The notes beneath the pieces are model-generated. The model was not told the origin of the DNA, did no database searches, and saw only the letters and a program-made list of their open reading frames with translations. Positions 2,441 to 49,766 of a DNA stretch of 64,000 nucleotides are shown in pieces (position 1 is the first letter of the stretch; each line of letters begins with the position of its first letter). The stretch lies in sequence record LC727695.1. One strand, 5' to 3'. The position numbers and the translations under genes were made by a program.

Positions 2441-2743
2441 TCAGTTATATGCGTGAAGAATATCATCCATATCTGTACATTGTACAGTTTCAATTTGATT
2501 ATAATTGTCGGCATTTAAAACTCTAAAGCCGCCTTCGGGATTACCCTCATCAACGCCTAATACGGTTAGGTCATCTCCTTCATCGGCAAACTTCCATTCT
2601 AGATAACCATTCTTTTTACAAGTACGCATGATCCAAATATCCTGTGTTGCTTGTAGAATCATACCAACTTGAACTTTATTCTTAGCGATAAGACTAATAC
2701 CATTAGCTAGCGCGTTTGCTAGACAGCTCACTGTTGAACTCAT
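2441..2743 (-). CDS. small SH3-like beta-barrel protein
   Basis: VQVGMILQATQDI...ADEGDDLTVLGV pattern. Confidence 0.5.
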   Translation of the reverse strand: MSSTVSCLANALANGISLIAKNKVQVGMILQATQDIWIMRTCKKNGYLEWKFADEGDDLTVLGVDEGNPEGGFRVLNADNYNQIETVQCTDMDDILHAYN

Positions 2744-2799
2744 TTCTTTTTACCTCTTTACAACTCTTCTCTTCAGTCAGCCATGACTTGTTAAAGATG

Positions 2800-2952
2800 C
2801 TATTTATGATAGGATTGAATTTCGGTGATTCTTTCTTTTTCTGATCGGTATCCATCGATATCACCTATATTGATAATTTTATTAATACCAATTAGCGTAC
2901 TACCTAAAACCGCTATAACTAAAAACAATGCTACATATTTCATTCCTTCCAT
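2800..2952 (-). CDS. small membrane protein (50 aa, not in ORF track)
   Basis: MEGMKYVALFLVIAVLGSTLIGINK..., GAGG SD, fills an intergenic gap. Confidence 0.6.
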   Translation of the reverse strand: MEGMKYVALFLVIAVLGSTLIGINKIINIGDIDGYRSEKERITEIQSYHK

Positions 2953-3037
2953 TTGTGATACCTCAGATAATATTTATTTTATTTGGCATGGTTGTTATAT
3001 AACTTTAAATTTTATTATAATAAACTATTACCCCGTA

Positions 3038-3340
3038 TTAAGGTAATAGTTTATTATATTTATTATAGTTATCGATAACCCATTGGCATGACATATGTTT
3101 AGGAGTATCACCTAGTAATTTGGTGTACGTTAGAAAATATATTACTTGGGCTTTGTTAAAGTCCAATCCAGCTTCTTCCCAGATATAACGATACTGTTCA
3201 GTTTTATCCCCATGTGCAGCAACCAGACCAGCGCATGCATCAATGTATCGATCCTCACCAGAGAAAACAGCACTTATGAATTTATCAGTATTATCCAACA
3301 TATACTGAGTCGATTTGATTACCTTATCATTCATTTTCAT
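3038..3340 (-). CDS. hypothetical protein
   Basis: 100-aa ORF. Confidence 0.7.
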   Translation of the reverse strand: MKMNDKVIKSTQYMLDNTDKFISAVFSGEDRYIDACAGLVAAHGDKTEQYRYIWEEAGLDFNKAQVIYFLTYTKLLGDTPKHMSCQWVIDNYNKYNKLLP

Positions 3341-3374
3341 TTGAATATACCTGTTTATATAAAAGGATATAAAA

Positions 3375-3392
3375 GCCTCCCCGAAGGGAGGC
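3375..3392 (-). terminator. intrinsic terminator, UUCG loop
   Basis: minus strand GCCUCCC-UUCG-GGGAGGC-UUUUA. Confidence 0.9.
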
Positions 3393-3402
3393 CATTATGA
3401 CG

Positions 3403-3837
3403 TTACATTGTGAAACGAATTGACACACCACAAATAGGACTATTGTCATCTGTCCAAATTTTTGCAGTACCATCATTTTTAATAGTTAAACAATAACCCC
3501 AACGGAGATTATTTATTTTAGTGGTATAACCACTTTTGAATACAGCCATGTCTTTATAAAGCTGAGGGATAGTTGGCACTACCTTTGACTGCATTTTACC
3601 AGATAAATCACGATAGTAGAGTTTATCTACAATCACATTATCAAATTTTTTGTAATCACCAAAGACTTCAGATAGATTAAACTCTACCCCATCTGTTTTC
3701 AGTGGGGCTGTCATAAAACTACCTTGCTCAGTTGTAACCATACTGATAGCAACATCATGGTCTAATAGAAATCGAGTTTCACCAATAGTTTTCTTATATA
3801 CTGGGAAACTTCCTAGCGGTTGTAGAACACTCATCAT
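3403..3837 (-). CDS. hypothetical protein
   Basis: 144-aa ORF, GGAG SD. Confidence 0.7.
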   Translation of the reverse strand: MMSVLQPLGSFPVYKKTIGETRFLLDHDVAISMVTTEQGSFMTAPLKTDGVEFNLSEVFGDYKKFDNVIVDKLYYRDLSGKMQSKVVPTIPQLYKDMAVFKSGYTTKINNLRWGYCLTIKNDGTAKIWTDDNSPICGVSIRFTM

Positions 3838-3870
3838 TAACTCCTGATTGACGGTCTATAAAATTGACCA

Positions 3871-4317
3871 TTATAAACCTTTATAGCATTCTACGCTAAT
3901 TTTCTTTATGGTCATATCAAACTCACTATCAACATACTCATTGTCATGATAGTATTCATCTGAATAACCTATGAGTTTTTTCTGGTTATGATAATTTAAA
4001 AAGAAAATAACACGCATCACAATACAAGCATGTTCGGGATGATTAAGGTATAATTCTTTCTTATTTAGGTCTAAATAAAGTGTTTTTATTTGAACTGGTT
4101 CATTAGTGAAAACTAGTTTTACAGGGTTATCCAGCTGTATTACTTTGGGTTCACTATTAAAAAATGTATCACCGGATTCACCTAAGTAATATGTAATTGA
4201 TTTAACATAATAGGCTATATCTTCGGTTTTCTCTAACCGGGTTATACCATAGCCGGTTATGACTGAAAGAACAAACAATGATAAAATAACTAATATTATC
4301 TCAGTCACATTGACCAC
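3871..4317 (-). CDS. N-terminally membrane-anchored protein
   Basis: hydrophobic residues ~6-26; resembles 7014-7448. Confidence 0.65.
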   Translation of the reverse strand: MVNVTEIILVILSLFVLSVITGYGITRLEKTEDIAYYVKSITYYLGESGDTFFNSEPKVIQLDNPVKLVFTNEPVQIKTLYLDLNKKELYLNHPEHACIVMRVIFFLNYHNQKKLIGYSDEYYHDNEYVDSEFDMTIKKISVECYKGL

Positions 4318-4597
4318 CCATATAAAGTGTTGTTATATCGATACACTGTGAAACAGAATGTTTACATGGAATAAATATTTCATCGATGGTTAAATCATCA
4401 TCGATAGGTTGAATACTTTCTAATCTACCAAATCCATCACAGTTAAATTTAAGTGCTGGATAACCTTCAATACCCATGCTAACCCAGCTATTATTCTGTT
4501 TAGTTACATGGTTGAATTTAAAATTACGCATCTTTCCTAGAAATTCAATTGTCCATGTAGCATCCTTCTGTTTCTTCAAATGGTAATATTTATTCAT
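4301..4597 (-). CDS. hypothetical protein
   Basis: 98-aa ORF. Confidence 0.65.
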   Translation of the reverse strand: MNKYYHLKKQKDATWTIEFLGKMRNFKFNHVTKQNNSWVSMGIEGYPALKFNCDGFGRLESIQPIDDDLTIDEIFIPCKHSVSQCIDITTLYMGGQCD

Positions 4598-4643
4598 TAG
4601 TATTCACCATTATTAAGATTAGTTTCATTCTATTAAATAGATA

Positions 4644-4661
4644 GGGGGTCTTTAGACCCCC
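4644..4661 (-). terminator. intrinsic terminator
   Basis: GGGGGTC-N4-GACCCCC stem. Confidence 0.75.
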
Positions 4662-4675
4662 ATTTTCATAATTAA

Positions 4676-5095
4676 TTAGAATGCAGAAATGGTCAACTCA
4701 TTGCACTTAACGGCAGCGAGTTTTTCCCAATTTTCTTCATGTTCCATCAAGCATTCAATTACAACATGCATGGACCATGACTCGCCATCAATATTTGCAA
4801 ATACAAAGAAACCATCATCAAGCTCAGTAATGCCACTAATCAGATTATTTTTGATCAGGTAGACCAATTGATCATTAACGATTTTAACTTCATGATCAAT
4901 GAGATGGCTGGCATATTTGCTAGTGATATCAAACACTTCTTTTGATGAAAGTGATCCATCGCGTTTGACGGCAGTTAGGCTCCAATTAACCAAAGACGGT
5001 GAACACCAATGAAGACCATGCACATTCATCAAAACTGGATGTTTGTTATCCATAGCTTTTACAGAATGAGCCCAGTACTTTTCATCAATATACAT
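4676..5095 (-). CDS. hypothetical protein
   Basis: 139-aa ORF, GGA SD. Confidence 0.7.
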   Translation of the reverse strand: MYIDEKYWAHSVKAMDNKHPVLMNVHGLHWCSPSLVNWSLTAVKRDGSLSSKEVFDITSKYASHLIDHEVKIVNDQLVYLIKNNLISGITELDDGFFVFANIDGESWSMHVVIECLMEHEENWEKLAAVKCNELTISAF

Positions 5096-5121
5096 TTATA
5101 TTTCCTTTTTTTCCAGATTGA

Positions 5122-5400
5122 TTATTTTATTACAATGCCTTCAGCATTGCGTACTGCTTCTTTAGCAAATTGAACATCTCCAAATACATGTTCAATAAAC
5201 TTTGATGCATCTGACCCAGCTACATCGCTTGATAGTAGTTTCACAGTCTTGGTAATCTTACCAGGATAATAGAGGATGATATCCCATCCATCACTTTCTT
5301 TAACAGAGCGAATTTTTAGAATAGGCTCTTCTTTACCAAGGTGTTCAAGACTAACACCACTTTTGACAGCGGCTTCATATACTACATCAGAGATAGACAT
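5122..5400 (-). CDS. hypothetical protein
   Basis: 92-aa ORF. Confidence 0.7.
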   Translation of the reverse strand: MSISDVVYEAAVKSGVSLEHLGKEEPILKIRSVKESDGWDIILYYPGKITKTVKLLSSDVAGSDASKFIEHVFGDVQFAKEAVRNAEGIVIK

Positions 5401-5427
5401 ATTAGTTACCTTCTTAAAAGAAAGCGG

Positions 5428-5661
5428 TCATGCGACCGCATCTTTAATCAGCGAGATAATTCGCGCTGATGGTTCGCGCCAAAATTCAATACGTACATTA
5501 TTGAACTGGCTATCGTGATGCATAAAAGCTGACGATTGCTTTGCTGCATCGTGATTCATAATAGAACGTAGCTGGATAATATTTTTGTCTTTGAGTCGGA
5601 TACCATCCAGATCAATGACTTTCAGTCCAGAGTTCATAGTTTTTACAGTTACATGTTGCAT
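5428..5661 (-). CDS. hypothetical protein
   Basis: 77-aa ORF. Confidence 0.65.
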   Translation of the reverse strand: MQHVTVKTMNSGLKVIDLDGIRLKDKNIIQLRSIMNHDAAKQSSAFMHHDSQFNNVRIEFWREPSARIISLIKDAVA

Positions 5662-5712
5662 TTACAATTTCCTTTTAGTTGGATTAAAAATCTGTTAAAC
5701 TTCTTTTATAAG

Positions 5713-6135
5713 TTATTTCGGTTTTGCGATAGCTTTAATGAGTTCCTGTTCAAGTTGCACGAGTTCATCATCTGCGATGTCGCGTGAAACACACATACAC
5801 CGTCCTGGTCGTTTATACCAAGTAATGCAGACATCACGCCAAATAAGCGCACCTTCATCGATATCATTGAGCCTGAAAGTCTTTAGCTCGTCAGTGTTAA
5901 GAGAAGGACCACCAGGATAAGGATAAAATCTTTCGTAATCAATTCCACTATATTTCATCACTAGGGCATATAGTGGTGGTTGAACCATTTTCCAATATGA
6001 AGCTAATTTAATATCCTCACTTGGTACAGATGCCCAATACTCTTTTTCTGCTTCATCCATTTCTTCTGGTTTAGGAAGTCCACCAATCAGGCAATATGCA
6101 TGTTCAGCAACTTCAACTAAGCGTGTATTTTTCAT
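5713..6135 (-). CDS. conserved phage hypothetical protein
   Basis: C-terminal ITWYKRPGR motif of a type seen in phage hypotheticals. Confidence 0.65.
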   Translation of the reverse strand: MKNTRLVEVAEHAYCLIGGLPKPEEMDEAEKEYWASVPSEDIKLASYWKMVQPPLYALVMKYSGIDYERFYPYPGGPSLNTDELKTFRLNDIDEGALIWRDVCITWYKRPGRCMCVSRDIADDELVQLEQELIKAIAKPK

Positions 6136-6476
6136 AGCTTAATCCTAATCTTTGTAATACCGCAATCGTGCTCACCGAACTCGACTTTTCTCCAGCCCGC
6201 TTCACGCAATCGTGCTTTAACAACCTTCATTACAGATGGAGCAATTTCATCCTTATGTTCGACAACAATTTCATAACTGCGAATAAAATGGAAGTTGTTG
6301 AAACCAGGTAGGTCTTCAAGCATCTTTCTCCGAATACCCGCACAGACTTCATTGGCTTGCCGTTCAACCAACATTGCATGAATTTCATTTTTGGTCGGAA
6401 TAGAGCAATTGCCAGTTTCTATTTGAAGAGTTTTGATTGCATTTTCCAAAAGAGATTTTGAAATACCAAGAGTCAT
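6132..6476 (-). CDS. hypothetical protein (IPT..E...L...GW family)
   Basis: resembles 39293-39694 and 39859-40254. Confidence 0.65.
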   Translation of the reverse strand: MTLGISKSLLENAIKTLQIETGNCSIPTKNEIHAMLVERQANEVCAGIRRKMLEDLPGFNNFHFIRSYEIVVEHKDEIAPSVMKVVKARLREAGWRKVEFGEHDCGITKIRIKL

Positions 6477-6529
6477 CGTATCAGTTCCCCGTGAGTTAAA
6501 TAAATTTTAATACGCGTTTTGATGGTTTA

Positions 6530-6889
6530 TTATTTACCAATAGATACAATTACCTCTTTTAATTTACCATGGTCATTAATTGCCATCTGACAAGTGGGGC
6601 ACGGATACGCATCCAATGGCCTGCCATCAGCACCGACCCGCGCAACATAGATCCTATATCCTTTTCCTTTGGAGAGGATGATAGAACGCAACTCACTATG
6701 CATCTCACAACGTAGATCAGACAATCCTGCTTTTAGAGAATAACGTTTCTGAACAGGATGTGTTTTACCATACATATTTTGGCTTTCACTAATAATCCTG
6801 CCACGCTTATCAGTAATGACTGAATAAACACGTTGACGATGTTTTACATAAGGGATCTCGCGACACTTTTCCAAAGCATAATCCAACAT
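6530..6889 (-). CDS. zinc-dependent cytidine/CMP deaminase-like protein
   Basis: H-S-E (HxE) and PCPTC (PCxxC) motifs; start moved to MLDYALEK (AGGT SD) because the longer ORF runs through a promoter and terminator. Confidence 0.75.
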   Translation of the reverse strand: MLDYALEKCREIPYVKHRQRVYSVITDKRGRIISESQNMYGKTHPVQKRYSLKAGLSDLRCEMHSELRSIILSKGKGYRIYVARVGADGRPLDAYPCPTCQMAINDHGKLKEVIVSIGK

Positions 6890-6922
6890 AATTGATTTAC
6901 CTATTTGAAATTTAGATAGTTT

Positions 6923-6968
6923 TATCACATTTGTAATATACTGTTTAAAATGCTTTAAATACAAAAAA
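6923..6968 (-). promoter_or_regulatory. phiKZ-type early promoter (subtype B)
   Basis: minus strand ...TATTTAAAGCATTTTAAACAGTATATTAC; core at 6933-6940. Confidence 0.8.
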
Positions 6969-6979
6969 ATAAAATATAA

Positions 6980-7000
6980 GCCCTCCCGCAATGGGAGGGC
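6980..7000 (-). terminator. intrinsic terminator
   Basis: GCCCTCCC-N5-GGGAGGGC; 26-bp identical copy at 45163-45188. Confidence 0.9.
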
Positions 7001-7013
7001 AATATAATAACTA

Positions 7014-7448
7014 TTACAATTTATTCGCCATTTTACCTGGTACTATAACCCAGTGTAAATTACATTTAATGTGTTTATTTTTAAGAGACATTCCTGAGAT
7101 ACACACATCCTCTTTGGTTATGCTAATTTTAAATAAAGCTTCCCATTTATTAGCTGTGATGATTTCATCAACAGTGTGATGGAATTTAAGTGTGTTATCT
7201 AATACTGAAATATAAAAGTCTTTATTGGGTTGACCTTTAGTTAAATCAATTATTAACCTATTATTTAATTTAGGTGAAAAAGTTGTTAATGTACCATCTT
7301 CATTATTTTCAGATATATAAGAGCAACCAGTAACAATGAAGACATTATCATTTACACTATTGGCATAAATTATTTTTGGGTGTTTAAAAATATTAATTAG
7401 ATAAACAATAATTGCTGACAGGATTAGTGCAATTACTATATCAGCCAT
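7014..7448 (-). CDS. N-terminally membrane-anchored protein
   Basis: MADIVIALILSAIIVYLINIF hydrophobic helix. Confidence 0.7.
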   Translation of the reverse strand: MADIVIALILSAIIVYLINIFKHPKIIYANSVNDNVFIVTGCSYISENNEDGTLTTFSPKLNNRLIIDLTKGQPNKDFYISVLDNTLKFHHTVDEIITANKWEALFKISITKEDVCISGMSLKNKHIKCNLHWVIVPGKMANKL

Positions 7449-7450
7449 TA

Positions 7451-7825
7451 TTAACCCCTATTAACAAAGATAAAATAATCTCGTAGTTCACCAGCTAAAT
7501 CTAATGGTTGATAATTATCACTACCATCATCATAAGGGATATAATCAGCACCTGCTTCTACAGCCGCTAAATATTCTTCCTCACCAACTGCTGGAATTAA
7601 ATGAAACGCTGGGCAATCGTCATTATTGCCATCTAGTATATCTAGCATGCCTGTAATGACACTATCTGCTACAGCCCTGTCCCGATCAGCTGGCTCTGTA
7701 AATTGATCAAGTTTAGAGTTATTGATAGCATTATCACGCATATTGACAACACTACTAATAAATAGTTCTTTAACTTGTTCCTGTGTTACAGGTTTAACAT
7801 TACCATCGCCTTCAAAATAGATCAT
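7451..7825 (-). CDS. hypothetical protein, paralog of 7870-8556
   Basis: shared LDGN...P.F.LIP.V..E...G..Y.P...D..G.LR motif. Confidence 0.75.
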   Translation of the reverse strand: MIYFEGDGNVKPVTQEQVKELFISSVVNMRDNAINNSKLDQFTEPADRDRAVADSVITGMLDILDGNNDDCPAFHLIPAVGEEEYLAAVEAGADYIPYDDGSDNYQPLDLAGELRDYFIFVNRG

Positions 7826-7869
7826 AATTACATACCTTGTTATCAGTAGCTTATAAATTTATTAGTTCA

Positions 7870-8556
7870 TTAACGCATTATTCGACTGATATCATCAGCT
7901 ATTTGTGATTGTATCTTTTCCGCTTTTTCTTTAGCTTTTTCTACTAACATAGCAAGTTGCTCTTGCGTAAAATTACCCGAGTAATACTTAACAGGTTTCT
8001 CACCTGCTAAACTAAGGAAATGGTTCAATAGTGCATGTGGTCCTTTGAAAGGTTCCGTAAATGTCTTAGAAACTTGATAACGTAGATTACCAGAAATATC
8101 AACTGCATCACACTTTGCACGGATATTATCTTTTAAATTTTCAACTGGGTTTACTGGCCAATAATTCTCACCAATACTTATTAGGTAGTCAATATCCTCT
8201 TGAGTAACATTAGGTATAAGTTTGAATCCGGGTATATTTGGATCATTGCCATCTAGGCCAGCTGCGATGCTATATATAAATCCATCAAGCATATCTCTGA
8301 TAGATAGTGCCTTATCTGTATTTTGAGTATCGGTATACTGTTTATGCCAGTAATTACGTGTGCTTTGAAGCCAATTTACAAAGAGAGAAGTTTGTTCCTC
8401 TTTTGTATATTCTCTCGGATCATCTACTTTCTCCCATTCTTTTTGTTTATTTATCTTAGGAGTCTTAGTTTTCTTTACAGGTTGTTCAATCGGTGAATCT
8501 GAAACCTTTGTTTCAAATCCTATACCAACTATAGTTTTATCGGTTGTATTGATCAT
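7870..8556 (-). CDS. hypothetical protein, paralog of 7451-7825
   Basis: same motif with N- and C-terminal extensions. Confidence 0.75.
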   Translation of the reverse strand: MINTTDKTIVGIGFETKVSDSPIEQPVKKTKTPKINKQKEWEKVDDPREYTKEEQTSLFVNWLQSTRNYWHKQYTDTQNTDKALSIRDMLDGFIYSIAAGLDGNDPNIPGFKLIPNVTQEDIDYLISIGENYWPVNPVENLKDNIRAKCDAVDISGNLRYQVSKTFTEPFKGPHALLNHFLSLAGEKPVKYYSGNFTQEQLAMLVEKAKEKAEKIQSQIADDISRIMR

Positions 8557-8783
8557 AGAACATGAAACCTTTGTATATAGTTTGGTTTTATGCGTTTAGT
8601 AAATTGCGCTGAATGCTCAATGTAATAAATGCATTTATCATTAAGTGAATACACTGTATAATAGGTTTTAGCACATATATGTCGTATGCCAATAGTAACA
8701 CATATTTCCCAACCGATCTTTGTAAATACATAACCTAACTGATTAGGCTCTATTTCTAAACATCTTTTGTCGAAGTTAACCAT
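8553..8783 (-). CDS. hypothetical protein
   Basis: 76-aa ORF with coupled overlaps. Confidence 0.55.
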   Translation of the reverse strand: MVNFDKRCLEIEPNQLGYVFTKIGWEICVTIGIRHICAKTYYTVYSLNDKCIYYIEHSAQFTKRIKPNYIQRFHVL

Positions 8784-9223
8784 TGTGGCTTCCTCGGAAT
8801 AGTTCGCAAGTACTGAACAATAAGTCGCGCGAATTCATCCATATCGTCTTCAACTAGAATTAACTCATCCAATGTATACCAGCCATCATCAGTTGTTTCA
8901 ATTAGATTAGAATCATCTTTGATTTCTCTATCTAAGATGGCGTATAATCTAGTTGGTCCAAAATCAGGCTCTTCTATAACCCCAAGATGTATCAAAGAAT
9001 TTCTATTATTAGTATCATCTGTGATAGTTGGCTGAACACTAATATTGGAAGTTTCCTCTGGGAAGTTATAACTATCTAAAATAGCAAAATCAGTTAATTG
9101 TCTAATAGCCTTTCTAGTGAAATCATAAACCTTCACTATGGGATGAATCACATAGGTTAGTTTATCATTAACTAAACGTTGCCTTAAATTAATAAATGCG
9201 CAGTTATTCATCGACATACTCAT
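8756..9223 (-). CDS. hypothetical protein
   Basis: 155-aa ORF. Confidence 0.65.
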   Translation of the reverse strand: MSMSMNNCAFINLRQRLVNDKLTYVIHPIVKVYDFTRKAIRQLTDFAILDSYNFPEETSNISVQPTITDDTNNRNSLIHLGVIEEPDFGPTRLYAILDREIKDDSNLIETTDDGWYTLDELILVEDDMDEFARLIVQYLRTIPRKPQWLTSTKDV

Positions 9224-9578
9224 GTACCATTTTAATAGTTTTCAAAAATACTTCTTGATTATTACTATCATCTGCTTTTAGAATAACAGGATGACACATA
9301 AATTCATTTTCCAATGATACTCGATAATATTCATTAATTGTCTGAATGAAATCAAGCGGGGGATAAATAATAATATCCTTATCTGTTTCGGCGTAATTAA
9401 CTACATTTGGTTCATGTTTAAATTTGGATTTATTTAATTTATAAACAAAGTATTTTATATCATTTTTATCTACTTGTGATACAAATACAATTCGTTCATA
9501 CATTGATAAATCAATATCTTTACCAATATTGATAGACAGTGGCATACCAATAAATGAGCGTTTAATATTTTCATTCAT
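9204..9578 (-). CDS. hypothetical protein (first gene after early promoter)
   Basis: 124-aa ORF, AGGT SD. Confidence 0.7.
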   Translation of the reverse strand: MNENIKRSFIGMPLSINIGKDIDLSMYERIVFVSQVDKNDIKYFVYKLNKSKFKHEPNVVNYAETDKDIIIYPPLDFIQTINEYYRVSLENEFMCHPVILKADDSNNQEVFLKTIKMVHEYVDE

Positions 9579-9617
9579 TTTTTAATTACCTATTTAATAG
9601 TTTAATGTTGTATTAGT

Positions 9618-9646
9618 GTAATATAGATTTCAAAAAAAATTTAATG
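9618..9646 (-). promoter_or_regulatory. phiKZ-type early promoter (subtype A)
   Basis: minus strand CATTAAATTTTTTTTGAAATCTATATTAC. Confidence 0.8.
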
Positions 9647-9652
9647 TAAAAG

Positions 9653-9672
9653 CCCTCTCCTTTGGGAGAGGG
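9653..9672 (-). terminator. intrinsic terminator
   Basis: CCCTCTCC-N4-GGAGAGGG plus U-tract. Confidence 0.9.
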
Positions 9673-9681
9673 TTTATGACT

Positions 9682-9789
9682 TTATTTATATTTTTTCTTA
9701 TGAGTGTGATAAATATAGCTAAATAGCATACCGATTGACATTGATACAGCTACCATACCCACATAGAAAAGTTCATTACTAAGTTGCAT
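9682..9789 (-). CDS. 35-aa membrane microprotein (not in ORF track)
   Basis: [35 protein letters not shown]; GAGG SD; lies between two terminators. Confidence 0.6.
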
Positions 9790-9850
9790 TAGATTTCCTC
9801 AAATAGTTTAATTTATCCCACCTAGTTTTAACCGTCCAGTCGGTTAAAAA

Positions 9851-9868
9851 GAGGACCCGAAGGTCCTC
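9851..9868 (-). terminator. intrinsic terminator, UUCG loop
   Basis: GAGGACC-UUCG-GGUCCUC-UUUUU. Confidence 0.9.
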
Positions 9869-9871
9869 TAA

Positions 9872-10111
9872 TTATTTCTTATAACTCTCAGGGCATCCCA
9901 TTTTGAGTTTGCCATCCTTTGGGTCTTCAGCGAATAATACTTCATCTGGACACTTCTTAACAGGAGTGTCCTTCGCCTTATCTTCCCATTCTACAACAGG
10001 CATTTCTAATTTCTTACGAAATTGATACGTATCATAAAGAACATACGTAATCATTCCCATAAGAGAGATTACCCATACCCATGCAACAATTAGGATGATT
10101 CTAGTTATCAT
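9872..10111 (-). CDS. small membrane-anchored protein
   Basis: N-terminal TM helix, two C-terminal Cys. Confidence 0.7.
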   Translation of the reverse strand: MITRIILIVAWVWVISLMGMITYVLYDTYQFRKKLEMPVVEWEDKAKDTPVKKCPDEVLFAEDPKDGKLKMGCPESYKK

Positions 10112-10478
10112 ACAACTCCTCGCCGACTATATTGAAACACCCATTACTGAGTTTTTCAGTCAGCATCTCACCAAGATCACTTCCCTCGCTCTTTGCCAAA
10201 AGCTTAAGTGCGGGATCAGTGAGATTTTGGTATATTACATCGACATTATCCAATGCGATATTAATAGCGAGTGCCTTATCACTCTGGTTTTTATCTATGG
10301 CAATGGATAGTTCATCTTGCAGTATTGCATACATCTCCAATGGCTCACCGCCATTAGTGTAGAATTGAACCATATTCTTTGCCAAGCTGTGCAGCACGTA
10401 GCAAGATGACACGGTTACGGGTTGTGCATTAACCGACATTGCTACCATAGTGATAATGAGCGAGAAGACGTATTTCAT
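10101..10478 (-). CDS. exported two-Cys helical protein (family member 1)
   Basis: signal peptide ending VNA; VSSC...G and C-terminal NGCFNIVG. Confidence 0.75.
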   Translation of the reverse strand: MKYVFSLIITMVAMSVNAQPVTVSSCYVLHSLAKNMVQFYTNGGEPLEMYAILQDELSIAIDKNQSDKALAINIALDNVDVIYQNLTDPALKLLAKSEGSDLGEMLTEKLSNGCFNIVGEELYDN

Positions 10479-10510
10479 CCTATTTTCCTTTTGAAAGTAT
10501 TCGATATGAA

Positions 10511-10966
10511 TTAAATGAGTTCAACAATTACCATGTGAGTGAATTTCTCACCAATATGCTTCATGCAGTAATTGCCATAATACCCGCTGATAAAAGCTGC
10601 CAGATTAGGAGTAGTCACATTGTAACCTTGACTACGGATATAATCATGGATCTCTTTACTGTTAAGGTCATTATTGATTTTATTAAGACTATTGAATACG
10701 AATGTTAACGCAATCCAATTATTGGTATCCAACTCATCTTTGAGTTTAGCAGAGTTGTTGAGCATAAGCACACCAACTTCATCTGCGCTATGACCTTCAC
10801 TCATTCGAAATACAGCTTGTTTAGTAATGGTTTCAACCATTGCACACGACTGCACAGTGAGTTGAGCATCTTTTTTACCAATCTTGATTTCAGCCATTGC
10901 GGTATTGAACATGATACCGGTAATGGCAATGAGACCAGCGAAAGCTGCTGCAATTACATTTTTCAT
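10511..10966 (-). CDS. exported two-Cys helical protein (member 2)
   Basis: signal peptide ending AMA; VQSC...EG and NYCMKHIG. Confidence 0.75.
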   Translation of the reverse strand: MKNVIAAAFAGLIAITGIMFNTAMAEIKIGKKDAQLTVQSCAMVETITKQAVFRMSEGHSADEVGVLMLNNSAKLKDELDTNNWIALTFVFNSLNKINNDLNSKEIHDYIRSQGYNVTTPNLAAFISGYYGNYCMKHIGEKFTHMVIVELI

Positions 10967-10983
10967 TTTAAATCCTTCTTCAT

Positions 10984-11367
10984 TTATTTAATGGTAAGAA
11001 TAGTAATTTTTTCAGGATTTACTGGAACTTTAATTTTAGATTTATGTTGGAGAAACTCAACAACCACCATAGACTTATCCATTTTATACACTTCACATAC
11101 TTTGACAAGCCTATCTACTACGCAACCAATTTTACCGGCATTTTGAGAAAAGAAAGATTTTGCTTTTCTAATAGCCTCGCGTTTCTCAAGCATTTCCATA
11201 TGCATATTTTCAATATGTTTATCGCGTTGAACACGATTAAACTTACGCATATGTCGTTCGATCTTACTAATTTCAGAAGAGTGTAATGAATAAGCAGCAG
11301 CTTCTTTCAGTTTCTCATATACTTCCACTGCCATTACCACGTGATCATCTTCAAAATTTCTTTTCAT
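10984..11367 (-). CDS. basic hypothetical protein, paralog of 35773-36375
   Basis: M.RN...V.M..E.Y..L...I.RH.RK.N...IR.A..FF..N. Confidence 0.7.
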   Translation of the reverse strand: MKRNFEDDHVVMAVEVYEKLKEAAAYSLHSSEISKIERHMRKFNRVQRDKHIENMHMEMLEKREAIRKAKSFFSQNAGKIGCVVDRLVKVCEVYKMDKSMVVVEFLQHKSKIKVPVNPEKITILTIK

Positions 11368-11380
11368 ATCTATGCCTTTT

Positions 11381-12175
11381 TTACTGTTTGATTAAATTTG
11401 ACACTGCTTCTTGTTTACATTGAGTATTCATCCATAATGCAATGTCTTTGGGTTCTTGTCCAGTTTCCACCATATCGATAATGATACGGGTATTACGTTG
11501 TGCTTTCTCACGGGCATTTAACATATCAGGATCATTAATAATGAATTCCCTACCCATAACTGGATCTAATCCAATATAAGCTTTAGATGCAATAGTTCTC
11601 ACCATTGCTTCATATTGATCACATCCACGTTCAGTTAATACAAGGTTATCTGCATTGGCACTACCGCCAAATAGCAAACCTAGGAATCCATAGAAAAAAG
11701 TGTGACGTATTGTCTTCCAACAAATACGCATCTCTTCATTTTTTGTATAAAGCTTTTCCCAATCAAACATTAAATAGAAACTTTCTTTTTGGATAGAAGG
11801 GTGTAACCAAATAGGTTTAATACTTACTTCAAGAAGTTTACTATTTGGATTCTTACCGATAAAGATAACTTCAACAATGGCTCGTGCTAAAGCATCTTTT
11901 TCTTTACCATTCCATCCAAATTTTATTTCATCAGCCGTAATGTAAAGACGTATTCCATCACCCACGTATTTGGGTAACCAAACAGCTTTACCTAGTTGCA
12001 CTGGAACATCATTAGGGATTCCCCCAACCATCCAGGTGGCCTTGGTGAAATGAATAGCAACATCATCATTCAACCATTTTAGAATAGCTGGCCTTACCCA
12101 ACTATCTACCAAATTACCACATGTCAATGCAGCTAGCATAGCCATGAGCATAATGACAATATAGATACTAATCAT
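11381..12175 (-). CDS. membrane protein fused to exported two-Cys domain (member 3)
   Basis: N-terminal TM; internal hydrophobic segment ending ANA then ERGC...TQC. Confidence 0.7.
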   Translation of the reverse strand: MISIYIVIMLMAMLAALTCGNLVDSWVRPAILKWLNDDVAIHFTKATWMVGGIPNDVPVQLGKAVWLPKYVGDGIRLYITADEIKFGWNGKEKDALARAIVEVIFIGKNPNSKLLEVSIKPIWLHPSIQKESFYLMFDWEKLYTKNEEMRICWKTIRHTFFYGFLGLLFGGSANADNLVLTERGCDQYEAMVRTIASKAYIGLDPVMGREFIINDPDMLNAREKAQRNTRIIIDMVETGQEPKDIALWMNTQCKQEAVSNLIKQ

Positions 12176-12178
12176 AGT

Positions 12179-12538
12179 CTACTCCAAGTTAAATTTAGTA
12201 CCAATTGCTTCAACACAATTTTCAGCTAACCTATCTAGGATAGCTCCATTGGTAAATCCTTTTCGTTTATTTACTCGAATATCAACTAAGTTTAACTTGG
12301 CATATACCGCACCTGCATAGAACTCCAAGTCATCCATATCCTTACGAGAGATCATGTCTAACTGCATCATTATCTCAAATTGGGATAGGTTCTTATCATA
12401 AAGCTCAGTTGCTTTTTGTGAAAGATTTACTGCCACATTACATGATTTCTTAGTAATACCCACTTCTACAGCGTGGGCAGGCTGACATGCAATGGACAGG
12501 ATTGGCAGGAAAAGGAATAATAGCCAATTCTTAAGCAT
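12179..12538 (-). CDS. exported two-Cys helical protein (member 4)
   Basis: signal peptide ending AHA; KKSC and ENCVEAIG. Confidence 0.75.
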   Translation of the reverse strand: MLKNWLLFLFLPILSIACQPAHAVEVGITKKSCNVAVNLSQKATELYDKNLSQFEIMMQLDMISRKDMDDLEFYAGAVYAKLNLVDIRVNKRKGFTNGAILDRLAENCVEAIGTKFNLE

Positions 12539-12550
12539 GTTGTACCTCCA

Positions 12551-12958
12551 TTATTTTAGAGTAAGTGGTTTTGCTTCAAACGCACCTGCCGCTACACAAC
12601 GCTGGAAATAACCATCAATGATGAATTTCTCAGGAGTGGTCTTATAGACTTTAGCAGCATTTGTTGCACGTGGCAAACTTGCCTCAATTGCCATTTTATC
12701 TACCTTAGACCATAGGTAAAATAGACCAGTGAGTTCTTCAACTTTAGACTGGTTGGTCTTTAGATCTTTAGTGTTATTAAGGATATAATGAATCCTTTCA
12801 TAAGTCTTCATTTGCACTTCAGTTACAGATGCACCTTTTACAAACAATTCATCTGCCTGTTTTACAAACTCGATGCATGAATCACGATTAGTGTACATGA
12901 CAGCCGAGTTAGCAGTGATAGTTACAATAGACAACATAAATGCAATTACATATTTCAT
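12551..12958 (-). CDS. exported two-Cys helical protein (member 5)
   Basis: signal peptide ending ANS/A; RDSC...KG and QRCVAAG. Confidence 0.75.
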   Translation of the reverse strand: MKYVIAFMLSIVTITANSAVMYTNRDSCIEFVKQADELFVKGASVTEVQMKTYERIHYILNNTKDLKTNQSKVEELTGLFYLWSKVDKMAIEASLPRATNAAKVYKTTPEKFIIDGYFQRCVAAGAFEAKPLTLK

Positions 12959-12984
12959 AATGAATTACCTCAAAATTAATTTTA

Positions 12985-13248
12985 TTAACTATTGGTTTCA
13001 CCACGAGTATTGAATTCTAAATCCAATACAACTTTAGTAAATTCTTCCAGTGCACCACCCTCGTAGATGAGTGGGTCACTGTCACCCCGGTACATGCTAC
13101 CTACCGGTACTTGACCACGAAACACCATCAGCATATCGTTTTTTACTATGACATGATGTTCATCCCCGACAGCAATGTCTTGGATGTGTCTCCAGCGTTC
13201 ACGCAGTAAGCTGCAAGCGCACCATACGGATTTCAAACGTTCAGTCAT
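12985..13248 (-). CDS. hypothetical protein (first gene after early promoter)
   Basis: 87-aa ORF, GAGG SD. Confidence 0.7.
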   Translation of the reverse strand: MTERLKSVWCACSLLRERWRHIQDIAVGDEHHVIVKNDMLMVFRGQVPVGSMYRGDSDPLIYEGGALEEFTKVVLDLEFNTRGETNS

Positions 13249-13281
13249 TGTATTGCCCTCTTGGTTATTAAATTCATATTT

Positions 13282-13317
13282 GTAATATAGCTTTTTAAAT
13301 AGTTTAAATACAAAAAA
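13282..13317 (-). promoter_or_regulatory. phiKZ-type early promoter (subtype B)
   Basis: minus strand TTTGTATTTAAACTATTTAAAAAGCTATATTAC. Confidence 0.8.
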
Positions 13318-13329
13318 AGATAAATAAAA

Positions 13330-13347
13330 CCCTCCCCGAAGGGAGGG
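13330..13347 (-). terminator. intrinsic terminator, UUCG loop
   Basis: CCCUCCC-UUCG-GGGAGGG-UUUUA. Confidence 0.9.
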
Positions 13348-13366
13348 TGTATATTAAGTAATTATT

Positions 13367-14023
13367 TTAACATACAATTTCATTATCAGAAAATAGTTTA
13401 TTATATTCTTTTAGTGCATCCCCACCAACCATAGTACACCTGCCATAGAGAACAGATATAGCCAGATCTTTAATAGCGGGGTGACAATTATTTAACTTAC
13501 TGATTAGTTGAGCTTTCTCAGTCAGATACAGTTCAGCAAAATCAGGCTTATCATTAACAATCGACCACATGTTTGAAATGGAATCTAGTAACTTAAGAGA
13601 TTGACCACTCCATGAAATGCGAGAAAGTCTTTCATGTTGTAAACTAATCCTAGTTTTACGATTACCTTCGTAAGTTACATTTGTTAGTTCAGTTACTAAA
13701 TTAACAACAGGGATTGAGAATAGTTTAGTTAGATCAGAAGCAGTTACAGCAGTATCCTCAATTACATCATGTAACCATGCTGCTTTATAAGCAGCGTGAG
13801 ATAGGTCGAATAATTGCGCCATCTCAGCTACTTGTAATAAATGATGCCAGTAAGGTTTTCCTGAACCATCTCGCAATTGACCAACAGCAGTATGTGCCGC
13901 AATGGCATATGATGCAGCCATTGCATTACCCGCATTGGAATATTTGCCATTACCTAGATGGTTAGTTAAGAGAATATTCTCTTTCCCTCCTTCTAGAATA
14001 TCGATAATTTCATTCATTAGCAT
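13367..14023 (-). CDS. HD-domain (p)ppGpp hydrolase-like protein (RelA/SpoT HD, Mesh1/SAH type)
   Basis: AH..QLR.GSGKPY..H, AWLHDVIEDT and KLLD.I.N motifs. Confidence 0.85.
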   Translation of the reverse strand: MLMNEIIDILEGGKENILLTNHLGNGKYSNAGNAMAASYAIAAHTAVGQLRDGSGKPYWHHLLQVAEMAQLFDLSHAAYKAAWLHDVIEDTAVTASDLTKLFSIPVVNLVTELTNVTYEGNRKTRISLQHERLSRISWSGQSLKLLDSISNMWSIVNDKPDFAELYLTEKAQLISKLNNCHPAIKDLAISVLYGRCTMVGGDALKEYNKLFSDNEIVC

Positions 14024-22911: not shown

Positions 22912-23169
22912 CTATTTATTTACACAGATTAGAGTATGTTCTACTTTACTAGTACTAGAAGAAAAATAACGTAATAGAACACCATCACTGATTTTTACAG
23001 TCTCTACATTATTACGAATAGCACTTGCTTTAGCTAGTTTTTGAATGCGCTCAATCGCGCTAAAACAAGTAGCCATGTCAGAGAACTCAGCGGTTGACTG
23101 CGATGCACCATTGGCTTGATAACCAGCGATACTGATACTACTAAAAAGAATTGCTAAAGTTGCATTCAT
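22912..23169 (-). CDS. small exported two-Cys protein
   Basis: hydrophobic N-terminus, EFSDMATC...LIC. Confidence 0.65.
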   Translation of the reverse strand: MNATLAILFSSISIAGYQANGASQSTAEFSDMATCFSAIERIQKLAKASAIRNNVETVKISDGVLLRYFSSSTSKVEHTLICVNK

Positions 23170-24096: not shown

Positions 24097-24564
24097 TTAT
24101 AGGAAGATATCTTCTACTGAGGGCACTATATTCTTTTCTTTTACAAGTTCAGTAGATTTGGTATAATGTGCATTAAATAGTTTCTTTAAATCTGCTTTTT
24201 CATATTTTACAGTATCTGCTAATTTCCAAATAGTAAGACCTAGATGAATACTAACTGAATTAACATGTTTTACGCATAGATCAATTAATTTGTTAAACTC
24301 TTCTAATTCATTTTTAATCAACGTTGCATCTAAAGCTTGGTGCAAACGATTAGATAATTTAACTTTATCTTTGTCAATTGTAAAGTTATTTTCAATATCC
24401 TTAGCACTCATCGGTGGTTCAACTTTATACCACACATTGGTTAGTTTACCGTCCACACGCGTCGTGATGGGATGTTTATAATCAGTCCAACTTCTATGTA
24501 GATTATGTTTATCATCAAGAACATCTACAGTAACTTTCTCATTACCTGTAAAGAATGGATACAT
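24097..24564 (-). CDS. hypothetical protein
   Basis: 155-aa ORF. Confidence 0.7.
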   Translation of the reverse strand: MYPFFTGNEKVTVDVLDDKHNLHRSWTDYKHPITTRVDGKLTNVWYKVEPPMSAKDIENNFTIDKDKVKLSNRLHQALDATLIKNELEEFNKLIDLCVKHVNSVSIHLGLTIWKLADTVKYEKADLKKLFNAHYTKSTELVKEKNIVPSVEDIFL

Positions 24565-24737
24565 TAGGTTGCCTTTATTTTATCAATGAGTAATTTTAAT
24601 AGTTCATCATTAGTTAAATTGTCTTTATTTTTAATAATGTCTTTTAGTTTAAACATATTGAAAGTATACCACAACCACTTATGAATTATATAACAAATCA
24701 CTATAACTAATAATAGTAGTGAATGTAATGCTAGCAT
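24564..24737 (-). CDS. 57-aa membrane protein (not in ORF track)
   Basis: MLALHSLLLLVIVICYIIHKWLW...; AGGT SD; first gene after promoter; stop overlaps next start. Confidence 0.6.
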   Translation of the reverse strand: MLALHSLLLLVIVICYIIHKWLWYTFNMFKLKDIIKNKDNLTNDELLKLLIDKIKAT

Positions 24738-24773
24738 TATAACTACCTATTTTGATATGACTTGACCAAATAT

Positions 24774-24803
24774 GTAATATAGATTTCAAAAAAAATTTAA
24801 TGC
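24774..24803 (-). promoter_or_regulatory. phiKZ-type early promoter (subtype A)
   Basis: near-identical to 9618-9646. Confidence 0.8.
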
Positions 24804-24808
24804 AATAA

Positions 24809-24830
24809 AGGAGAGCTAAATAGCTCTCCT
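24809..24830 (-). terminator. intrinsic terminator
   Basis: AGGAGAGCTA stem inverted repeat plus U-tract. Confidence 0.85.
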
Positions 24831-24838
24831 ATTTATGC

Positions 24839-25129
24839 TTATTTATTTTTCTTTCTTGACTTATCTTTAATAACTAAGTCTAATGCTTCAAACATTTTAA
24901 CAGCAGTTAAATGGTCGATAGAGTATGCCTTTTTACGTAAACGTCCAATAGCTACTGTATACTGGTATTCAGATAAACCATCACTCATATTGTCAATAAT
25001 TGATAGTGCTTCTTTATAAAGCCTGTTACACTTTATCGTGTGTTTGATGGCATAATAACCCCAGTTAATTAAAGCCATCATTATAATCAGAAACAAAATA
25101 CCTATAATTACTGTCATGATATCATTCAT
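24839..25129 (-). CDS. membrane-anchored protein, paralog of 25122-25439
   Basis: TM then IIDNMSDGLSEYQY. Confidence 0.7.
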   Translation of the reverse strand: MNDIMTVIIGILFLIIMMALINWGYYAIKHTIKCNRLYKEALSIIDNMSDGLSEYQYTVAIGRLRKKAYSIDHLTAVKMFEALDLVIKDKSRKKNK

Positions 25130-25439
25130 TTGCTGTTTCCCTATTATTACATTTTAATATAATCAATGAGTTGATATCGTAAATAAAAGATGTAAAAATA
25201 TGTTGATTTGTTATTTTAGATGATTCTTTATCTATAATGTCTTGGACAGCATTTTGATAGAAAAAATAACTTATGCCATTGGGCATTTTATCTAATACAT
25301 ATCTAACCTTATAAACACCCATCCAGTGAATATAATGATTTTTTATATTAATAATGAAAGTTACACATGTTGATATAGCCGTTAGTGTTATCATTGATAT
25401 AACAAATACTTTATACATTTGCAACCCACAGATTCTCAT
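25122..25439 (-). CDS. membrane-anchored protein, paralog of 24839-25129
   Basis: TM then VLDKMPNGISYFFY. Confidence 0.7.
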   Translation of the reverse strand: MRICGLQMYKVFVISMITLTAISTCVTFIINIKNHYIHWMGVYKVRYVLDKMPNGISYFFYQNAVQDIIDKESSKITNQHIFTSFIYDINSLIILKCNNRETANE

Positions 25440-25452
25440 CTAGATGAAATAA

Positions 25453-25472
25453 ACCAGCCCCGAAGGGCTGGT
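25453..25472 (-). terminator. intrinsic terminator, UUCG loop
   Basis: ACCAGCCC-UUCG-GGGCUGGU-UU. Confidence 0.9.
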
Positions 25473-25474
25473 AT

Positions 25475-25843
25475 TTATTTTACAACCACAGCTTTACCGT
25501 AGTTGTTATCCATACAGGTTTTAAATGATGTAACGTATGCATCACGTGGGCTTTGTCTACGTGAATACACAACGTGCACCTCTTTAATTGCTGCTGGGAG
25601 AACATTGTAAAGAACGTTATCTTTGTTCTTCACGCCGTACCCTTTTAGGGATCGTAGGTTTTCTTCCCATTGTAAAATGGGTGTTTTACGCTGACGTGCT
25701 TCTGCTGTGGCATGTGCTATAAGTGCAACACCATTACAGTAATTCTCGTCAACTACCAACGATGCAGCTAGTGGGTTTGATACGTATAACAACGTACTTA
25801 ATACGGCCACTAACTTCATTACGTGTGTTAAACATTGCATCAC
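25475..25843 (-). CDS. exported two-Cys helical protein (distant member 6)
   Basis: signal peptide ending LAA; ENYC...ARQ and KTCM. Confidence 0.7.
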   Translation of the reverse strand: MMQCLTHVMKLVAVLSTLLYVSNPLAASLVVDENYCNGVALIAHATAEARQRKTPILQWEENLRSLKGYGVKNKDNVLYNVLPAAIKEVHVVYSRRQSPRDAYVTSFKTCMDNNYGKAVVVK

Positions 25844-48666: not shown

Positions 48667-49029
48667 TTAGAATCCAAGATAATCAAAGAATCCATGGTAA
48701 TCGAATGTGCGTGTTGGGATACTTGTATCCGAAAAGAACGTATTTATTTGTTTGGCTAATTCAGTGTAGTAATGTGAATTATATTTGTTGATCTTAGTAA
48801 CCATCTTCTCATCAAAGAGATAGGTTACACGCATATTCAGTGGTTTAACTACATTGATCTCAATAACTACCTTACGAACCATATCCTCAGATAAGAGTAT
48901 ACACTTAGCGTCACATGGTGAAACCTCTATTTTAATACCTACACAAGGCTTGAGGTTATCGTGATATTTCGTGAGTTCCTCTAATACAGCATCCATAGTT
49001 TGGATGAGCTTTATATTGGTGATGTTCAT
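48667..49029 (-). CDS. hypothetical protein
   Basis: ends GFFDYLGF; similar to 47768-48142. Confidence 0.7.
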   Translation of the reverse strand: MNITNIKLIQTMDAVLEELTKYHDNLKPCVGIKIEVSPCDAKCILLSEDMVRKVVIEINVVKPLNMRVTYLFDEKMVTKINKYNSHYYTELAKQINTFFSDTSIPTRTFDYHGFFDYLGF

Positions 49030-49766
49030 TACAGCCCCTCGTAAATATCCTTTCGTTTTGGATTGATGCCTGCAACCTTACCTTTATCATTATTGATGTA
49101 ACAAAGGAATTCATCGCAAGTGGTGGTCTTTACAAATGGGATAATTTGAATGAGTTCTAGTAAAGTATATTCTTTACCAAAGTATTTACACATTTGTGTA
49201 AGTTGACTACACACTACATTATAAAAGCCCCTAGTATTTTGTAGTGTAAGATACTCACCATCAATCACTCTATCATTATTTACCATGTATACATCACGAA
49301 TAGGATAAGTGTCTTTTAAGGGACCATTGCCAAATTTGACACCATGTACCCCATTAGGTCCATTTAGTAAATAGTATCCAGTTGGTACTGACCAATAAGT
49401 AGTTCCTTTAAATCCCAATAGATGTCCATATGGTTCATGATAATCGGATGTATAGCACTGATCATCCTCACAGATAACCTCCTGGTACATCGAGTATTCA
49501 ACAGGTAGTTGTTTAGTTGGATCACTAGGGTGAACCACCAATATTATTGAATTTTCTGGATAACTGGTCCAACCGCAACTACCCAGTTTGGATTGCTTAT
49601 TGAAATTACATGGAGCAATTCGCGGAGTATGATTAGAGTAGAATAATGGTACTCCATAAAAAGCAAGTGGTTCGTAATTAACACTAGCTTTAGTATACAT
49701 GCCAATACTAATCAGAAATACTGCACAGAATATACGCATCGATAATTTAAACATCAGTGCATCCAC
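49029..49766 (-). CDS. Cys-rich exported protein
   Basis: signal-like N-terminus, several Cys pairs (C-N10-C, C-N4-C). Confidence 0.7.
   Translation of the reverse strand: MDALMFKLSMRIFCAVFLISIGMYTKASVNYEPLAFYGVPLFYSNHTPRIAPCNFNKQSKLGSCGWTSYPENSIILVVHPSDPTKQLPVEYSMYQEVICEDDQCYTSDYHEPYGHLLGFKGTTYWSVPTGYYLLNGPNGVHGVKFGNGPLKDTYPIRDVYMVNNDRVIDGEYLTLQNTRGFYNVVCSQLTQMCKYFGKEYTLLELIQIIPFVKTTTCDEFLCYINNDKGKVAGINPKRKDIYEGL

Follow-up and report, generated by a model that had tools for sequence, protein, structure and literature searches.

Are the small exported proteins that are encoded close together in the genome of a jumbo phage members of a single family, and what could they be doing in the envelope of the infected cell? 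This question is raised by positions 10101 to 12958 of the 64,000-nucleotide stretch of record LC727695.1 that was analyzed here (hereafter, the window). An original prediction had described five genes of this segment and a more distant one at 25475 as highly diverged exported proteins built on a common two-cysteine plan. The window belongs to Pseudomonas phage PA7, and over its bases 9800-13300 it shares 100% identity with this phage and 99.1% with phiKZ. All six candidate open reading frames (ORFs) were found where they had been placed, on the minus strand, and correspond to phiKZ gp252 (10101..10478; 125 amino acids [aa]), gp251 (10511..10966; 151 aa), gp249 (11381..12175; 264 aa), gp248 (12179..12538; 119 aa), gp247 (12551..12958; 135 aa) and gp229 (25475..25843). 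As the prediction had supposed, no published function was found for these genes, nor was a paper that treats them as a family.

Sequence relationships and shared architecture

The proteins proved as divergent as had been claimed, since their pairwise identity is 15-20% and BLASTP alone returns nothing significant. A profile of the mature gp248 family was compared to 494 ORFs, and its top non-self matches were gp251 (E = 2.5e-4), gp252 (E = 5e-4) and gp333 of phage Psa21 (E = 2.5e-3), all three in register with the profile at the first cysteine. One iteration of the profile brought in PS119XW gp301, which is, together with Psa21 gp333, a gp251-like gene. Profile-profile alignment of the mature parts using hhalign linked gp248 to gp251 (E = 7e-6 over 95 columns), gp251 to gp252 (E = 1.6e-4 over 100 columns) and gp248 to gp252 (E = 5.5e-4), and a second run between the gp248 and gp251 families returned a probability of 74% and an E value of 2.8e-5 with both cysteines aligned. 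Five columns are invariant in an alignment of nine sequences: both cysteines, a threonine and a serine just before the first cysteine, and a glycine five residues after the second. This glycine is thus present in 9/9 of the aligned gp252-, gp251- and gp248-type sequences. Because the profile and profile-profile matches are significant despite the null BLASTP result, gp248, gp251 and gp252 are, as judged from these alignments, homologous members of one diverged paralogous family.

The hhalign comparison joined gp248, gp251 and gp252 but left the other candidates aside: gp247, the C-terminal domain of gp249 and gp229 lack significant sequence similarity to this core (E = 0.016 to 0.7), the weak link of the gp249 domain lying at E = 0.016. 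A match between gp247 and PS119XW gp302 was recovered by hhalign (E = 1.2e-4; 0.39 using BLASTP alone), and gp247 was not matched by the gp252/gp251/gp248 profile. Searches of Pfam, NCBIfam and PHROGs connected the genes to no named family, a PDB sequence search gave no match, and a word-based protein search retrieved close relatives only. PHROGs places each gene in a separate family of unknown function, with a single weak cross-match from gp251 to the gp248 family.

These results bear on the simplest alternative, in which there is no family and the combination of a signal peptide with two cysteines is coincidental among unrelated small exported proteins. The low identity with its null BLASTP result, the separate PHROGs families and the missing sequence link of gp247, the gp249 C-terminal domain and gp229 speak in its favor. 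Nevertheless, we consider it extremely improbable, given the E values of 1e-4 to 1e-5 over the full length with both cysteines in register for gp248, gp251 and gp252, the structural matches described below (TMq 0.63-0.78) and the clustering of the genes (P ~0.003). For gp248, gp251 and gp252, it is refuted by the profile and profile-profile matches.

The architecture attributed to the five genes and to the gene at 25475 was seen in the translations of all six ORFs. Signal peptides were called using our own rule-based script and by direct reading of the translations. Each protein contains a hydrophobic signal-like segment, which is N-terminal except in gp249, where it is internal at residues 158-175. 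In gp252, gp251, gp247 and gp229, a charged N-terminus leads into a hydrophobic core, which is followed by a cleavage site of small residues. The small-residue sites of the six proteins (arrows mark the predicted cut) are VNA↓Q in gp252, AMA↓E in gp251, ANA↓D in gp249, AHA↓V in gp248, ANS↓A in gp247 and LAA↓S in gp229. According to rules for Sec export and signal peptidase I cleavage (charged N-terminus, core of 8-16 residues, small residues at -3 and -1), gp252, gp251, gp247 and gp229 are predicted to carry such signals, as is gp249 in its internal segment. Approximately 6 of the 107 window genes encode a canonical signal peptide, and 4 of those are located within 6 consecutive genes (permutation P ~0.003).

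Exactly two cysteines occur in the mature part of each of 23 family sequences (23/23) from seven phages, namely phiKZ/PA7, L007 (a metagenomic relative, ~80% identical), PhiPA3, PS119XW, Phabio, Psa21 and 201phi2-1. The cysteine spacing that had been put forward holds in all 23, with the first cysteine 8-16 residues into the mature part and the second 8-18 residues from the end. Furthermore, an alternating-hydrophobic, strand-like stretch ends 3-4 residues ahead of the first cysteine in 6/6 window proteins. The pairs are Cys26 and Cys114 in gp252, whose mature part is acidic with an isoelectric point (pI) of 4.2, Cys41 and Cys134 in gp251, Cys33 and Cys108 in gp248, Cys28 and Cys121 in gp247, and Cys185 and Cys253 in the C-terminal domain of gp249 (residues 176-264; 11384..11650, minus strand). 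In gp229, which probably starts at the ATG at 25840 (121 aa), the cysteines are residues 36 and 110 in the numbering of the listed ORF.

Predicted fold, envelope location and distribution

An AlphaFold2 model of mature gp248 built from nine sequences had a predicted local distance difference test score (pLDDT) of 86.9 and a predicted template modeling score (pTM) of 0.77. Numbered from the start of the mature part, the model runs from a strand (6-9) through four helices (12-30, 35-48, 53-74, which is kinked, and 79-92) to a second strand (97-100). Cys15 is located where the first helix starts and Cys90 where the last one ends, and both adjoin the two terminal strands, which pair with each other. 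A disulfide staple is expected because of this position of Cys15 and Cys90 in the model, and one disulfide probably ties the first helix to the last. The disulfide-stapled helical bundle originally envisaged therefore survives in its conserved cysteine pair and in a model geometry expected for a staple, but the predicted fold is not purely helical, as it includes the terminal strands.

We searched the predicted viral structures of BFVD using the gp248 model and, besides gp248 orthologues (template modeling score relative to the query [TMq] 0.75-0.92), recovered proteins of other types. These comprise a 151-residue gp251-type entry (TMq 0.71), Psa21 gp333 (TMq 0.63), the gp229-type PS119XW gp264 (accession confirmed, 54% identical to gp229; TMq 0.78, score relative to the target [TMt] 0.66, root-mean-square deviation 2.7, probability 1.0), the gp247-like PS119XW gp302 (TMq 0.64, probability 0.96), and a 264-residue entry taken as gp249 from its length alone (TMq 0.69, probability 0.99, 92 columns). 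The BFVD model of gp247 itself reached a TMq of 0.42 against the gp248 model. Our own AlphaFold2 model of gp247 is weak (pLDDT 60) and has five helices in the same order as gp248; a structure search using this weak model was uninformative. A common fold of the members, as originally supposed, is consequently predicted for the gp251 and gp229 types and probable for the gp249 type, but gp247 is reached only through PS119XW gp302, its own models being weak. In summary, gp229, a distant member, and the gp249 C-terminal domain appear to join the family by predicted fold only, and gp247 is a probable, weakly joined member on account of its architecture and its link to PS119XW gp302.

The gp248 model had no significant match to solved structures (best 50 of 315 matches examined). 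The nearest were of the saposin fold, with TMq 0.50-0.54, TMt 0.55-0.64 and E values of about 1: saposin A (4uex_A; TMq 0.54, TMt 0.64, probability 0.80), Na-SLP-1, saposin C and the prophytepsin insert. As the domain lacks a significant match among solved structures, a solved structure would add a fold variant.

Although gp248 has the AHA signal peptidase I site that the original prediction relied upon, a conserved lipobox makes a lipoprotein likelier. A lipobox cysteine, Cys18 in gp248, stands at the end of the hydrophobic core with Ala or Gly at -1 in 6/8 gp248 orthologues (gp248 and 5/7 others), the exceptions being Psa21, with Met at -1, and P0013, which has no such cysteine. Given this conservation, gp248 is probably a lipoprotein, and cleavage by signal peptidase I at AHA, five residues past the lipobox cysteine, remains an alternative. 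In Pseudomonas, the residues that follow the lipidated cysteine decide whether a lipoprotein is retained in the inner membrane. Since those of gp248 contain no such retention signal, the protein would most likely reside on the outer membrane.

The C-terminal half of gp249 had been counted as a family member, and a two-cysteine domain is indeed found at its C-terminus, but the complete protein is predicted to be membrane-anchored and to cross the membrane twice. It consists of an N-terminal membrane segment, a 135-aa middle domain, the hydrophobic segment at 158-175 and the family-type domain. The two hydrophobic segments, the positive charges just ahead of the second one and the resemblance of the C-terminal domain to exported paralogues suggest that the middle domain is cytoplasmic and the C-terminal domain periplasmic. 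The gene is continuous and conserved in L007, and no gp249 homologue was found outside phiKZ-type genomes. An in-frame methionine, Met149 (window 11731), directly precedes the canonical signal peptide, and it is conserved in L007 as well. Translation from this codon could possibly yield a separate secreted protein of 116 residues, although its ribosome-binding site is poor.

Copy number varies between lineages, with 5+1 members in phiKZ, 3+1 in PS119XW (three of them in a row), 2 in Psa21 and 1 in PhiPA3, and gp248 is the one conserved member. Orthologues of gp248 occur in PhiPA3, PS119XW, Phabio, Psa21, D6 and 201phi2-1, that is, in all related Pseudomonas jumbo phages examined, and those of gp229 are 39-55% identical in PS119XW, Phabio, 201phi2-1 and others. 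The gp248 and gp229 types are thus kept across the Pseudomonas nucleus-forming phages while the other members are lineage-variable. A HMMER profile searched against 1.84 billion representative proteins returned 8 matches, one of which is long and probably spurious, and an IMG/VR scan using the gp248-family alignment found PA7 and Phabio only. These searches place the family in nucleus-forming jumbo phages of Pseudomonas and nowhere else. Taken together, it is well supported that the family domain, as modeled, is a bundle of helices that the pairing of its N- and C-terminal strands closes, and that it is restricted to this lineage and encoded in one predicted early operon.

A predicted early operon and its dispensability

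An AT-rich octamer was recovered de novo as part of an over-represented 9-mer in the window. It has 10 copies on the minus strand, mostly intergenic and just after terminators, with a conserved AT-rich sequence upstream. The same octamer is given as a phiKZ promoter (PMC7058600, Table 2), and such motifs are early promoters read by the virion RNA polymerase (reviewed in PMC7598289). One copy (13282..13289, minus strand) lies between gp246.1 and the intrinsic terminator that follows gp246 and ends the upstream unit (13329..13348, minus strand; a hairpin of 8 pairs, then a T run). At the other end, a hairpin and T run directly after gp253 (9850..9869, minus strand) is the probable end of the operon; the scan scored this hairpin on the plus strand, as its minus-strand T run is one T below threshold. 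No minus-strand terminator was detected by the scan between the 13282 promoter and the 9850-9869 hairpin, and matches to host sigma-70 promoters in the block were not above chance. Given the early promoter, the flanking hairpins and the lack of an internal terminator, gp246.1, gp247, gp248, gp249, gp250, gp251, gp252 and gp253 are therefore predicted to form a single operon, 6/8 genes of which would encode envelope-directed products.

Experimental data from close relatives bear on this unit. In phage Churi, which is 99% identical in this region, both infection models yielded the gp248 orthologue at 15 min after infection, the 15-min proteome of only one model contained the gp252 orthologue (Churi gp055), and over-expression of the gp248 orthologue did not inhibit growth of PAO1 (PMC11849849). 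A transposon study of phiKZ isolated and sequenced a viable orf252 insertion and found orf184-304 to be largely non-essential; its authors suggest that this large region is host-interaction or anti-defense DNA (PMC12676376). In the supplement to that study, PHIKZ247-253 and PHIKZ229 each have 10-33 insertion sites and 2,600-10,900 reads, and their essential neighbor PHIKZ228 has 13 reads only. The family genes are accessory rather than core, and dispensable on the laboratory host.

The diversified repertoire originally pictured is one under purifying selection. A survey of the ratio of nonsynonymous to synonymous substitution rates (dN/dS) against L007 gave values of 0.08-0.16 for gp247, gp249 and gp252 and no overall sign of diversifying selection (dS is saturated in this comparison for gp248 and gp251).

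Three genes of the operon lie outside the family. The first, gp246.1 (12985..13248, minus strand; 87 aa), and gp250, inside the array (10984..11367, minus strand; 127 aa), have no signal peptide. The last, gp253 (9872..10111, minus strand; 79 aa), has an N-terminal membrane segment and two cysteines in its tail, and is an envelope protein outside the two-cysteine family. It is the most conserved product of the operon, with 96% identity to its L007 counterpart. A tiny protein with the same layout of membrane segment and tail cysteines is encoded 3' of family genes in phiKZ (gp253), PS119XW (gp303) and Phabio (gp363), and genes of this kind were located at 9872-10111 of the window, L004:7348-7518 and L005:6351-6506. 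Just upstream of the operon, gp246 (13367-14023) encodes an HD-domain protein that some records describe as a RelA/SpoT-family (p)ppGpp enzyme, and a gp246-type gene adjoins a gp248-type gene in PhiPA3 and PS119XW too. Following gp229, past its terminator (25459-25467), three genes for small single-pass membrane proteins occupy 24564-25439.

Elsewhere in the window, 22912-23169 encodes a candidate exported protein of 85 aa whose signal-like N-terminus is uncharged and which contains two cysteines (positions 35 and 82), and 49029-49766 another of 245 aa with a signal peptide and eight cysteines in its mature part. Minus-strand copies of the octamer are located at 6933, 9618, 13282, 16353, 16785, 24774, 40301, 54095 and other positions. 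Its copies are spaced approximately 3-10 kb apart and in most cases directly follow a hairpin, the loop region of which is identical in eight places. With this recurring combination of octamer and hairpin, the early operons of the window can therefore be mapped from sequence alone.

Several database records need to be read with these genes in mind. The PA7 RefSeq annotation uses internal starts for gp252 (10373), gp253 (10060), gp229 (25819) and gp246.1 (13128), where the phiKZ record has longer starts, and thereby deprives gp252 of its signal peptide and truncates the membrane segment of gp253. The record of phage U5 (MT995928) names gp249 a methyltransferase, gp248 a DNA methylase and gp247 a MazF-family protein, and no search supports these names. 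Many phiKZ-identical fragments on contigs of 200-600 bases are deposited as partial proteins of 'Klebsiella pneumoniae', and look like carried-over phage DNA. For annotation, the gain is that six 'hypothetical proteins' can be grouped into a single family whose locations are predicted, and that several records were found to cut off signal peptides or to carry unsupported names.

Possible roles and comparison with known systems

How might such a family serve the phage? We tentatively propose, at somewhat less than even chances, that its members are envelope-binding modules exported early to guard the infected cell, superinfection exclusion being the likeliest form. From their signal sequences, the members would be sent by Sec to different sites of the envelope: gp248 as a lipoprotein, most likely to the outer membrane; gp247, gp251, gp252 and the unlinked gp229 as soluble proteins to the periplasm; and gp249 as an anchored protein to the inner membrane, where the family domain would be on the periplasmic side and a separate domain in the cytoplasm. 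There, they would act as non-toxic binding modules, each having a surface of its own (pI 4.2 to 9.4), and by binding envelope components within minutes of infection could render the cell refractory to further envelope attack. Exclusion of a second phage may be achieved by masking the receptor or entry route, as the Llp and Cor lipoproteins do for phage T5, or by neutralizing the cell-wall-cutting enzyme of incoming tails, as Spackle does for phage T4. Early expression and dispensability fit the proposed functions without choosing among them.

Several observations weigh against superinfection exclusion. Neither T4 Spackle, T5 Llp and Cor nor another named family turned up in searches of Pfam, NCBIfam, PHROGs and PDB sequences, and the best 50 of 315 structural matches did not include Spackle. 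Purifying selection with no excess of amino-acid changes is not the obvious signature of a surface caught in an arms race, the membership of gp247 is weak, and export, lipidation and the disulfide are all predictions only. Moreover, phiKZ-type phages have been reported to co-infect the same cell (discussed in the review PMC12908238), and any exclusion therefore cannot be absolute.

Other roles have to be weighed against the same evidence. Members could be periplasmic, immunity-like inhibitors of envelope enzymes of the host or a neighbor, or of envelope anti-phage defenses, that keep the cell intact until progeny are made. The block is early, dispensable on the laboratory host and charge-diversified, and it sits inside the large non-essential region suggested to be host-interaction or anti-defense DNA, all of which would suit such inhibitors; we nonetheless hold this to be rather unlikely, as no similarity to a known immunity or inhibitor family was found, and the present data do not separate it from early envelope guarding. 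An unlikely explanation is that the proteins handle lipids, that is, that saposin-like binders extract, shuttle or reorganize envelope lipids early in infection (phospholipid, lipid A or lipoprotein acyl chains), for example in the remodeling of membranes. Here the best solved-structure matches, all saposin-fold, agree with a disulfide that would tie the first helix to the last, as in saposins, and with the predicted lipid anchor of one member, gp248. Yet those matches are not significant (E about 1), there is no Pfam saposin match, saposins have six cysteines in three disulfides instead of two cysteines, the terminal strands are foreign to them, and the harmless over-expression of the gp248 orthologue argues against a membrane-lytic activity of the saposin type.

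The topology predicted for gp249, in which a 135-aa domain lies on the cytoplasmic side and the family domain beyond the membrane, invites a role in lysis timing, in which gp249 would sense a secondary infection in the periplasm and signal to its cytoplasmic domain, the soluble paralogues acting as co-sensors, to feed a delay akin to lysis inhibition at high multiplicity. Delayed lysis at high multiplicity is reported for phiKZ, together with a cytoplasmic holin regulator for which the input signal is unknown (PMC12894885). We judge this role very unlikely: the idea is wholly conjectural and nothing ties it to gp142 or gp143, gp249 is present in phiKZ-type genomes only while the lysis cassette is conserved more widely, and the roles of spanin, holin and endolysin are already held by gp141-144. 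Decidedly unlikely, but of broader consequence, are two further readings: a new periplasmic fold class deployed as an early envelope program, in which lipid-anchored, soluble and transmembrane members would work jointly and gp249 would relay a periplasmic event, such as the arrival of a second phage, inward; or saposin-like action on lipids. Either of these two, if true, would be the first envelope-directed system described for nucleus-forming phages.

Among nucleus-forming phages, phiKZ serves as the model, and it is related to candidates for therapy; prior work has centered on the cytoplasm, with its nucleus, polymerases and ribosome binders. Our analysis suggests that a phiKZ-type phage also gives an early operon mostly to predicted envelope-directed proteins that share a single, hitherto undescribed domain. 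If they do control secondary infection or protect the envelope, this would bear on competition between phages, on the delay of lysis at high multiplicity and on mixtures of such phages.

Four known systems are the nearest for comparison. A lipoprotein gene that adjoins the gene of an inner-membrane protein with a periplasmic helical domain recalls spanins of the Rz/Rz1 type, but this dispensable block has an early promoter, and a typical o-spanin is much smaller than gp248. Furthermore, the holin, endolysin and spanins of phiKZ are gp141-144, and its spanins gp141 and gp141.1 were shown to work (PMC12894885). The block is therefore not the lysis cassette, and a spanin or lysis role was rejected for this early, insertion-tolerant locus. 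With saposin-like proteins (SAPLIP fold), the top structural matches, the family shares a compact bundle of four or five helices of which the first and last are predicted to be tied; it differs in its non-significant scores, its two cysteines instead of six, its extra terminal strands and the absence of a sequence-family match.

Llp of phage T5 and the Cor family are outer-membrane lipoproteins that block the phage receptor, and gp248 is likewise a predicted small early lipoprotein, dispensable and with a cysteine pair, but it is modeled as helical and has no match in Pfam, PHROGs or NCBIfam. Spackle of T4 (Sp, gp61.3) is a small, early, dispensable, signal-peptide-bearing and largely helical periplasmic protein of superinfection exclusion from a large lytic myovirus. 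The window family is also small, early, dispensable, signal-bearing and, by prediction, largely helical. A Spackle relationship is unsupported by the PDB sequence search, which gave no match at E values up to 10, or by the structural matches, where Spackle falls outside the best 50 of 315. Unlike Spackle, the window family is multi-copy and comes in predicted lipid-anchored and membrane-anchored versions.

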